The position numbers and the translations under genes were made by a program. The notes below the pieces were generated by a model, which saw nothing but the letters and a program-made list of their open reading frames with translations, was not told where the DNA came from and ran no database searches. DNA of 64,000 nt from Macrostomum lignano (Eukaryota). Shown piece by piece: positions 58,501-61,500 of this stretch. Location: NCBI GenBank assembly GCA_002269645.1, contig NIVC01000527.1, forward strand, positions 62,001 through 126,000, given 5' to 3'. Position 1 is the stretch's first letter. The number at the start of each line of letters is the position of its first letter.

Positions 58501-61500
58501 CACGTGATCCCACCAGCACTCGGAGAAGTTGGGCAGCTGGTGCTCAAGCGTGTACTCCAATATCTCGAACATAAAGCTGAGCACGCAGCAGAGCCAATAG
58601 TCTCGCAATATGAGAGTTTTAAGCCACCAGCCGAAGAAATGCACGGTCACAAAGCCGTCCAGTTTGTCCCAGACATTGTGAAACGGATCAGTGGCGTTGG
58701 CCGGATCGTAGATCAAGCAGTTGCCGCCGTAGTCCTTCTCTGGCAGGGGCCGGCCGAGCTCAGGGTCGAAGTAGCGCAAAAGCTTTCTGGCGTCGTGGAC
58801 GTTCTGGAGCGGTGGGGAAGGGGGAAGCTTCTCTCTCTCTCTCTCTCTCTCTCTCTCTCTCTCTCTCTCTCTCTCTCTCTCTCTCTCTCTCTCTCTCTCT
58901 CTCTCTCTCTCTCTCTCTCTCTCTCTCTCTCTCGCTTCCAGCCCTGACGAAAAATTTACCTAATTCGAAATATCGGCAATCCAACTAAATTGACTTTGTT
59001 CAGTCCTTTCTACCGTGTCAGGGCCTGAGATTGGAGGTGCCCTCCTCTCTCTCTCTCTCTCTCTCTCTCTCTCTCTCTCTCTCTCTCTCTCTCTCTCTCT
59101 CTCTCTCTCGCTTCCAGCCCTGACGAAAAATTTACCTAATTCGAAATATCGGCAATCCAACTAAATTGACTTTGTTCAGTCCTTTCTACCGTGTCAGGGC
59201 CTGAGATTGGAGGTGCCCTCCTCTCTCTCTCAGAGATTCAAGAGAGATTCAAATAAAACTGTAATAACTGTAACAATCAGAGAACAGCTCGTCAGATTCT
59301 TCACAGCCAATCAGAGAACAGCTTGTCAGATTCTTCACAGCTAATCAGAGAACAGCTTGTCAGATTCTTCACAACCAGTCAAAAAACAGCTTGTTCGCAG
59401 CCAAGATCTTCAGAACCAATAAAAAACAGCTTGTTCACAGCCAATATTCTTCACAGCCAATCAGAAAACAGCTCGTCAGATTCTTCACAGCCAATCAAAA
59501 AACAGCTTGTCAGATTCTTCACAGCCAATCAGAGAACAGCTCGTCAGATTCTTCACAGCCAATCAAAAAACAGCTTGTGAGATTCTTCACAGCCAATCAA
59601 AAAACAGCTCGTCAGATTCTTCACAGCCAATCAAAAAACAGCTCGTCAGATTCTTCACAGCCAATCAAAACACAGCTTGTCAGATTCTTCACAGCCAATC
59701 AGAGAACAGCCTGTCATATTCTTCTCAAACAATCAGATAACAGCTTGTCAGATTCTTCACAGCCAATCAAAAAACAGCTCGTCAGATTCTTCACAGCCAA
59801 TCAAAACACAGCTTGTCAGATTCTTCACAGCCAATCAGAGAACAGCCTGTCATATTCTTCTCAAACAATCAGATAACATCTTGTCAGATTCTTCACAACC
59901 AATAAGAGAACAGCTTGTCCTATTTTCCATAACCAATCAGAAAACAGCAAATAATTTGATTTACTCTTGCCAAGAAGATAACTAATGAGTTTTTCTAGTT
60001 TTTAGCTTTGGCATTTCTCTAAAAGACCTAACAAATGGGGGATACTATTGACATATTCAAGTTTCTAACCACAATAAAGACAAAGAAACAGCAAAAAAGG
60101 ATATTCGAACGCTAAATTAATTAATGGTAATGACTACACAAAGAACAGGCCAAAAAGGGGGATTAAAGAGACAAGGCAAAGCAATATAACTAGCGCAGTC
60201 TAGCTACATGCAAACAAGCTCACGAGGAGGATAGCAGGAACAGTTAAGAATGGCGCGCAGCTTGTTAAGAAAGGATAATAAAGAATAAAGGCAGGGGAGG
60301 AGAGAAAGAGGTAAGGAAATTAAAATTTGGGCTAGAGAGAAGAGAACTTCAAAGGATTCCGGAAATTGAGCTTGAGCAGCACGCAAACTAAAGGATAATT
60401 CAGTTTACAATATATGACCGTACTAACTGACTGTACTAAAGTACTATCTGATTTACAGAGTACAGTCAATAGGCAGGACAGAAGGCACAGACAGCTAGCT
60501 TAGTGAAATATCACACTAATTGGATCAAATTGGAACTGTGTTTTTTGGAAAAAAATTTCCACAATCCCGACTTCCCATCTTGCTATTGGCACATCAGGTA
60601 CGCGTAAGTGTACTGTACATAGTGCTGACACATTGTGAATATTCACACTACTATACTGTGAATGTACACTACTATACTGTGAATGTACACTACTATACTG
60701 TGAATGTACACTACTATACTGTGAATTTACACTACTATACTGTGAATGTACACCACTATACTGTGAATGTACACTACTATACTGTGAATGTACACCACTA
60801 TACTGTGAATGTACACCACTATACTGTGAATGTACACTACTATACTGTGAATGTACACCACTATACTGTGAATGTACAATACTATACTGTGAATGTACAC
60901 CACTATACTGTGAATGTACACTACTATACAGTGAATGTACACTACTATACTGTGAATGTACACTAGTATACTGTGAATGTACACTAGTATACTGTGAATG
61001 TACACTACTATACTGTGAATGTACACTACTATACTGTGAATGTACACCACTATACTGTGAATGTACACTACTATACAGTGAATGTACACTACTATACAGT
61101 GAATGTACACTACTATACAGTGAATGTACACTACTATACAGTGAATGTACACTACTATACTGTGAATGTACACTACTATAATGTGAATGTACACTACTAT
61201 ACTGTGAATGTACACTACTATACTGTGAATGTACACCACTATACTGTGAATGTACACTACTATACTGTGAATGTACACTACTATACTGTGAATGTACACC
61301 ACTATACTGTGAATGTACACTACTATACTGTGAATGTACACCACTATACTGTGAATGTACACTACTATACTGTGAATGTACACCACTATACTGTGAATGT
61401 ACACCACTATACTGTGAATGTACACTACTATACTGTGAATGTACACTACTATACTGTGAATGTACACCACTATACTGTGAATGTACACTACTATACTGTG

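Follow-up and report, generated by a model that had tools for sequence, protein, structure and literature searches.

A duplicated minimal-hammerhead motif in an intronic microsatellite of Macrostomum lignano: a probable retroelement remnant rather than a retrozyme array

Two identical copies of a short sequence with the core of a type I hammerhead ribozyme lie head to tail, 176 nt apart, within an intronic (CT)n microsatellite of a phosphatidylserine synthase gene in the flatworm Macrostomum lignano (assembly GCA_002269645.1, contig NIVC01000527.1; the whole 64-kb stretch analyzed is hereafter called the window). Such an arrangement raises the question of whether the locus is a retrozyme, that is, part of a multicopy tandem family whose transcripts release circular RNAs, as a preliminary description of this DNA had proposed, or whether a ribozyme motif of another provenance has been doubled by other means. 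Our analysis favors the latter answer: we put at roughly 60% the probability that the 176-nt repeat is the degenerate remnant of a retroelement bearing a minimal hammerhead ribozyme (min-HHR), duplicated through microsatellite instability or misassembly, and not a retrozyme array generated from RNA circles.

Architecture of the repeat and its orientation in the host gene

The structure extends over 58829-59232 and consists of a (CT)52 tract, a 112-nt unit, a (CT)32.5 tract, an identical second unit and approximately (CT)6. Each unit contains the hammerhead-like sequence that we designate motif B. In the following list of features, L001 (contig NIVC01002142.1) and L004 (contig NIVC01002143.1) denote two sister loci of the same assembly.

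58830..58933, + strand: (CT)52 microsatellite, CT on this strand and (GA)n in the pre-mRNA (Tandem Repeats Finder, TRF: period 2, 52 copies, 100%)
58933..59044, + strand: unit copy 1, about 112 nt, comprising a minimal-hammerhead-like motif and about 70 nt of 3' sequence
58941..58977, + strand: motif B copy 1, with C17 at 58974
59045..59109: internal (CT)32.5 tract separating the units (TRF)
59109..59220, + strand: unit copy 2, 100% identical to copy 1 and missing in sister loci L001 and L004
59117..59153, + strand: motif B copy 2, with C17 at 59150
59221..59232: closing short (CT)~6 tract
58504..58803, - strand: exon of the PTDSS2-like (PSS) host gene, whose acceptor AG corresponds to + strand 58804-58805

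The identical units, spaced by 176 nt and split by (CT)n, that the preliminary description had reported are borne out by three measures: TRF returns a period of 176, 2.1 copies and 100% matches over 58869-59231, the identity run at offset 176 amounts to 187 nt, and the unit at 58933-59044 is reproduced exactly at 59109-59220. The dinucleotide repeat makes up 37% of the 176-nt monomer and, since the short (CT)~6 tract closes the structure, the unit has the same microsatellite on both flanks.

The placement of the repeat in a PTDSS2 intron is likewise corroborated. A tblastn search with a PTDSS2 query locates minus-strand exons at 62150-61896, 58809-58504, 58160- (start only), 57066-56803 and 55828-55637; the gene encodes a Pfam PSS domain, and the joined exons are 100% identical to the M. 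lignano protein BOX15_Mlig034026g2. The repeat sits at the 3' end of an intron of about 3.1 kb, with (CT)52 beginning 26 nt from the acceptor (the 3' splice site), and the rest of this intron is made up of 34-nt and 21-nt minisatellites. What had gone unremarked is the orientation: because the host exons are on the minus strand, motif B, which is read on the + strand, is antisense to the pre-mRNA, and this antisense pre-mRNA is the only transcript known to cross it.

The micro- and minisatellite load of the window is extraordinary, with at least 15 large arrays that are mostly intronic. Among them are arrays of 18 nt (8159-11152), 21 nt (17119-17616 and 60645-61791), 24 nt (19598-20998), 28 nt (50983-53117), 43 nt (54634-55374), (ACAG)n (55939-56781) and 34 nt (59274-59948).

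The core strings CTGACGA and GAAA and the two presumptive cleavage sites, after 58974 and 59150, are found where they had been placed. In the first copy, the CUGACGA core (CTGACGA in the DNA) occupies 58944-58950, after which A58951 is bulged; helix I is a 3-bp GCC/GGC pairing of 58941-43 with 58975-77; helix II (58952-58966) reads A.C, then four A-U pairs, then U.U; G12-A14 fall at 58967-69, within the GAAA string at 58967-58970, and the palindrome A15.1-U16.1 (AUAU) lies at 58970-73, next to C17. Motif B thereby contains the conserved type I core, C3-U4-G5-A6-N7-G8-A9 ... G12-A13-A14 ... U16.1-H17, with an open helix I; it has no loop 3, and its palindromic 15.2-16.2 permits a dimeric helix III. 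The earlier view of a type I hammerhead whose palindromic stem III would act in a dimer is thus sustained, the same AUAU helix III being present in an intact relative 56 kb away (motif A, below). So are its two caveats, the 3-bp stem I and the A.C at 10.1-11.1: where motif A has the conserved G10.1-C11.1, A58952 of motif B faces C58966, and the motif falls short both of a stable helix II of 6-8 bp and of a helix I of 4-5 bp. Having neither a closed loop 1 nor a loop 3, motif B is not a canonical type I hammerhead either, a class with a helix III hairpin and loop 1-loop 2 contacts.

Kinship of motif B with an intact hammerhead in the same window

Whether a motif with such weak helices is a hammerhead at all can be judged by comparison with motif A, which occurs at the opposite end of the window.

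3045..3085, + strand: motif A copy 1, a well-formed minimal type I hammerhead
5961..6001, + strand: motif A copy 2, 2916 nt downstream of copy 1

Both copies of motif A are identical and read AAACC-CUGACGA-A-GGCCCA-GUC-UGGGCC-GAAAUAUC-GGUUU. With 5 bp in helix I, a bulged A following A9, the G10.1-C11.1 pair, a GC-rich helix II of 6 bp, an AUAU helix III and no loop 3, they carry every min-HHR trait published in PMC4209133, and their minimum free energy (MFE) structure consists exactly of hammerhead helices I and II (-14.8 kcal/mol). Motif A resides in a non-coding unit of about 1.2 kb that has (CTAT)n on both sides and that is located within a TTLL-like gene, in an intron and in antisense orientation, with the neighboring exons on the minus strand at 125-565 and 7138-7482. 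Positions 560-7110 are composed of two successions of this ~1.2-kb unit (1929-3160 and 4845-6076) and 1-1.7 kb of (CTAT)n; the tandem has a period of 2916 nt, includes the microsatellite and shows 6 mismatches between the units. Each unit opens with three subrepeats of about 258 nt rich in CTA/CTACGA triplets, and a query with the TTLL-like exons against proteins matched no M. lignano protein.

The 21 bases specified in CCCUGACGAA-N14-CGAAAUAUCGG are all the same in motif B as in motif A, and so is their spacing; this pattern is matched four times in the window, at two independent loci, against an expectation of none, and the pattern CCCTGACGAA-N14-CGAAATATCGG likewise occurs at two independent loci of the window with 0 expected. 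The helix II segments, both 15 nt long, differ at 12 of 15 bases and keep their pairing for the most part, five pairs being compensated between the two motifs (four in helix II, one in helix I) as against 0-2 in out-of-register controls. This covariation is seen against one relative only, motif A; further copies of the unit or the motif were absent from about 100 kb of M. lignano DNA (the 64-kb window plus some 36 kb of independent sequence from other loci), searched by sensitive blastn (the window and the locus of an older paralog of the host gene) and by means of a covariance model, R1, run unfiltered (the window and loci L001-L005). Two metagenome scans and one viral scan gave 0 matches to the motif patterns, these collections not being expected to hold flatworm DNA.

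It could be argued that motif B is a chance look-alike, namely an ordinary intronic CUGANGA...GAAA...UH sequence that a microsatellite has duplicated. Loose criteria (core strings and a helix I of at least 3 bp) would speak for this explanation, as they yield five matches in the window vs 2.9 +/- 2.7 in dinucleotide shuffles; the descriptor in question, however, disallowed a bulged nucleotide after A9 and was replaced by a min-HHR descriptor that stipulates this bulge, no loop 3, a palindromic 15.2/16.2, a helix I no shorter than 3 bp and four or more of the six helix II pairs. In the window, the latter retrieves only the two copies of motif A and the two of motif B, and it has 0 matches in 200 shuffles. 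The lack of any Rfam hammerhead match, be it at the gathering threshold over the whole window or at E <= 10 on 521 nt and on 68 nt, could also be invoked, but the same search misses the well-formed motif A and is therefore uninformative for minimal hammerheads without loop 3, for which reason we dropped it as evidence against a hammerhead. With 21 of 21 core and flank bases in common and five compensatory pairs in register, a fortuitous resemblance appears most improbable, and the sequence comparison assigns motif B to the same hammerhead lineage as motif A. This kinship is confined to the ribozyme: outside the hammerhead, the flanks of the two motifs have no detectable homology (score 8 vs null 7.8), so that A and B are not copies of one element.

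Single-unit sister loci, predicted folding and the origin of the tandem

Sister locus L004 is about 99% identical to the window, whereas the figure for L001 is about 95% overall, substitutions in its flanks amounting to about 1%. In both loci, only one unit is present, preceded by a long (CT)n and followed by a short (CT)6-7, and the flanks of both are collinear with the window. The tandem is private to contig NIVC01000527.1 and, L001 being the outgroup, one gain in the lineage of the window is more parsimonious than two losses. Of the tandem arrangement put forward in the preliminary description, the 176-nt head-to-tail dimer thus stands for this contig and does not extend to L001 and L004. 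The sole substitution in the unit among the sister loci is an A>T in L001 (unit at 13607-13718) at the equivalent of window position 58987, outside the hammerhead; it removes a TAA stop and yields a spurious open reading frame (ORF) of 189 codons. In the older paralog (78% protein identity; L003 and L005), the equivalent intron contains no unit, and in L003 (NIVC01000019.1, 5050-5450) it holds an unrelated 21-nt minisatellite (CTCACATTAGAGATCCATAAT), from which it follows that the intron content has been wholly turned over between the paralogs.

Folding predictions suggest that motif B is probably not a working ribozyme, or only barely one. The helix II hairpin has a predicted free energy of 0.0 kcal/mol, vs -10.9 kcal/mol in motif A; the hammerhead fold is worth -2.5 kcal/mol, vs -3.1 for an alternative fold; and the predicted pair probability of helix I is 0.0 within the whole unit since CCCUGACG is engaged with CGUGUCAGGG, located 70 nt downstream, in a long-range stem between the unit ends (unit MFE -27 kcal/mol). 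The dimeric helix III, which is the same in motif A, comprises four A-U pairs with a duplex free energy of about +0.2. Judged as a structured RNA, the unit falls short of significance on either strand (z-scores -1.6 and -1.7). Intact min-HHRs also cleave poorly in vitro (PMC4209133).

These observations may be accommodated by the following sequence of events. The 112-nt unit would be a short, probably 5'-truncated remnant of a non-autonomous or Penelope-like retroelement with a minimal type I hammerhead, inserted into the intronic (CT)n of the phosphatidylserine synthase gene, antisense to the gene, before the three near-identical copies of the locus separated. The insertion would have left the unit with the same dinucleotide repeat on each side, and one event of unequal exchange or of slippage at replication, involving the long tract upstream and the short one downstream, could then have doubled the unit together with (CT)n into the 176-nt dimer; an error of long-read assembly would yield the same picture. 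With its 32.5 repeats, the middle tract could be a hybrid of both flanking tracts, and the motif A locus has a matching architecture, with (CTAT)n on each side and a tandem duplication that takes in the microsatellite. The chain from microsatellite insertion through identical flanks and unequal exchange to a tandem of unit plus microsatellite is, coming from two loci, suggestive only.

Several points weigh against this remnant reading. No ORF for a reverse transcriptase (RT) or a GIY-YIG endonuclease was found in the window or the loci, the link to Penelope-like elements (PLEs) being drawn from the motif type alone; motifs A and B share nothing beyond the hammerhead; and the count of the unit covers about 100 kb of the genome. 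That both independent hammerhead loci have undergone tandem duplication could hint at a mechanism driven by the element itself. Furthermore, the combination of no change in 21 core and flank bases with 12 changes in the 15 of helix II resembles a constrained ribozyme variant and not neutral decay, and motif B may have been functional at insertion and may retain some activity.

Among the alternatives, an assembly artefact, whereby an extra unit and (CT)n were added in NIVC01000527.1 to a truly single-unit locus, is compatible with the remnant account of where the motif came from. It would readily explain why the copies are 100% identical over 187 nt, microsatellite included, and why both sister contigs of the same assembly are single-unit, and microsatellite-rich regions, such as a window with more than 15 arrays, are prone to misassembly; yet no direct sign of misassembly is apparent, the flanks are collinear with the sister loci and true copy-number variation is common at microsatellite-flanked segments, all of which leaves this explanation unlikely, albeit worth serious consideration. 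A somewhat less probable proposition is that motif B is a solo variant, still functional with the help of cellular factors, from a separate min-HHR subfamily of M. lignano characterized by an A/U-rich helix II, and that its duplication is incidental. The fully kept core and flanks around an almost wholly changed, in-register and mostly paired helix II are what such a variant would display, min-HHR families have been reported as highly variable and rich in covariation (PMC4209133), and all three sister loci carry the motif without any difference; the last point, however, is uninformative on constraint, as these loci are only about 1% apart in their flanks. Moreover, G10.1-C11.1, which is highly conserved in min-HHRs (PMC4209133), is missing, the predicted helices are unstable and no second example of such a helix II turned up, the sole faint look-alike being at 38567-38611 and having a mutated core (E = 0.6). 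This sequence (+ strand; covariance-model match of 13.4 bits), whose A/U-rich helix II segment is as in motif B at 10 of 15 positions and whose core reads CUGGCAA and GAAAAAAU, could be a decayed relative or noise.

That the locus is an active non-LTR retrozyme (one without long terminal repeats, LTRs), in which a + strand dimer forms a double hammerhead via the AUAU helix III, is cleaved after 58974 and 59150 and releases a 176-nt (CU)n-containing monomer that is circularized and amenable to reverse transcription, is in our judgment very unlikely. Its appeal lies in the head-to-tail dimer of a dimer-dependent, type I hammerhead-family motif, in a monomer size that falls inside the 150-450 bp of metazoan retrozymes, which are known from dimers to large multimers (PMC7229834), in compensatory changes of helix II relative to motif A that suggest past constraint, and in unit ends that pair together. 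Against it stand the presence of just two copies, the single-unit sister loci and the lack of an additional copy in the ~100 kb searched; in addition, the motif combines A.C at 10.1-11.1, a helix II of zero predicted free energy, a 3-bp helix I and a helix III of four A-U pairs, the unit is predicted to fold in a way that sequesters the core, the motif runs antisense to the transcript of the host gene, and even intact min-HHRs cleave poorly in vitro (PMC4209133). A single ancestral hammerhead cannot release a monomer, and the dimer therefore cannot stem from circular RNA. The candidate retrozyme of the preliminary description, in the sense of a multicopy family of circle-releasing tandems, is not supported: the ~100 kb searched contain only two copies of a degenerate motif, next to single-unit sisters. 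We give no more credence to an intermediate scenario, a proto-retrozyme in which min-HHR fragments enter microsatellites, unequal exchange dimerizes the solo ribozyme and a small (CU)n-containing RNA can be released, with both window loci (the 176-nt and the 2916-nt tandem) as examples.

Known systems and biological significance

The closest known system to motif B is the minimal hammerhead of the PLE type. Most min-HHRs are single motifs ascribed to truncated PLEs (PMC4209133), and about 2000 of them have been recorded in another platyhelminth, Schistosoma mansoni (Cervera & de la Pena 2014, PMC4209133). What motif B has in common with the PLE min-HHRs is a type I layout whose helix I is open and short, the CUGANGA core, one unpaired nucleotide after A9 and before 10.1, the lack of loop 3, and a palindromic 15.2/16.2 (AUAU) implying that the ribozyme acts in a dimer; PLE min-HHRs, too, are mostly isolated. 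Motif B departs from them in lacking G10.1-C11.1, in the length of both helix II and helix I, and in having no visible PLE ORF (RT and GIY-YIG) or pseudo-LTR (pLTR) context. For helix I, the hammerheads of Drosophila virilis PLEs, in which it measures 2 bp, are a published exception to the usual 4-5 bp (PMC4209133). Motif A displays all the traits of the min-HHR motif and yet, like motif B, has no adjacent RT.

Metazoan non-LTR retrozymes (PMC7229834) share with the 176-nt repeat the head-to-tail arrangement, the 150-450 bp size range and a type I hammerhead in each monomer; PLE pLTRs have been put forward as their source (Cervera & de la Pena 2020, PMC7229834; Li et al. 2026, 10.64898/2026.07.22.740005). 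They are nonetheless multicopy, bear canonical hammerheads with a helix III hairpin and loop-loop contacts, and give rise to abundant circular RNAs, as opposed to two copies in one of three sister loci here; vertebrate retrozymes are, moreover, reportedly excluded from introns (preprint 10.64898/2026.07.22.740005), whereas the 176-nt repeat is intronic.

PLEs favor insertion into microsatellites and have hammerheads near their 3' end (Craig et al. 2021, PMC8557442). Such microsatellite-targeted elements resemble the unit in being embedded in a microsatellite, in the near-3' position of the hammerhead and in their tandem arrangements (PMC8557442), and it is because of this embedding that no target-site duplication can be discerned at the locus. 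For PLEs, insertion has been reported into (TA)n, (CA)n and (C)n, and canonical hammerheads are missing from the most strongly biased clades (PMC8557442); the flanking repeats here are (CT)n and (CTAT)n, with no PLE protein.

Two further features of the window concern neither hammerhead locus. A short ORF at 38690-38800 (+ strand), which starts with MPRKCSVVGCKSNYESERLATKVHLFPKDSVERE and resembles the N-terminus of a THAP zinc finger, could represent a THAP-domain gene or what is left of a transposase. Within the range of an annotated glutamate-receptor gene, 46587-47564 (- strand) is an open frame of 326 codons for which no homolog, M. lignano products included, was detectable in a collection of 5.8 billion proteins; an intronic or out-of-frame stretch is more probable here than a coding one.

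Minimal hammerheads are massively scattered in metazoans, flatworms included, mostly as dead single copies, and one more weak intronic copy is to be expected. M. lignano, a regeneration model for which no report of hammerheads was found in the searchable literature, carries PLE-type minimal hammerheads, and given that Rfam models miss the minimal class entirely, routine annotation would overlook such motifs. If the dimer were cleaved and circularized, it would offer a snapshot of the birth of a retrozyme, which is unlikely on present evidence; were the proto-retrozyme scenario true, it would amount to a DNA-level birth route of non-LTR retrozyme arrays from Penelope-like-element debris. As it is, the fact that both hammerhead loci of the window are embedded in microsatellites and have been duplicated together with them suggests a simple DNA-level route leading from solo ribozymes to the tandem pairs that dimer-dependent hammerheads need.

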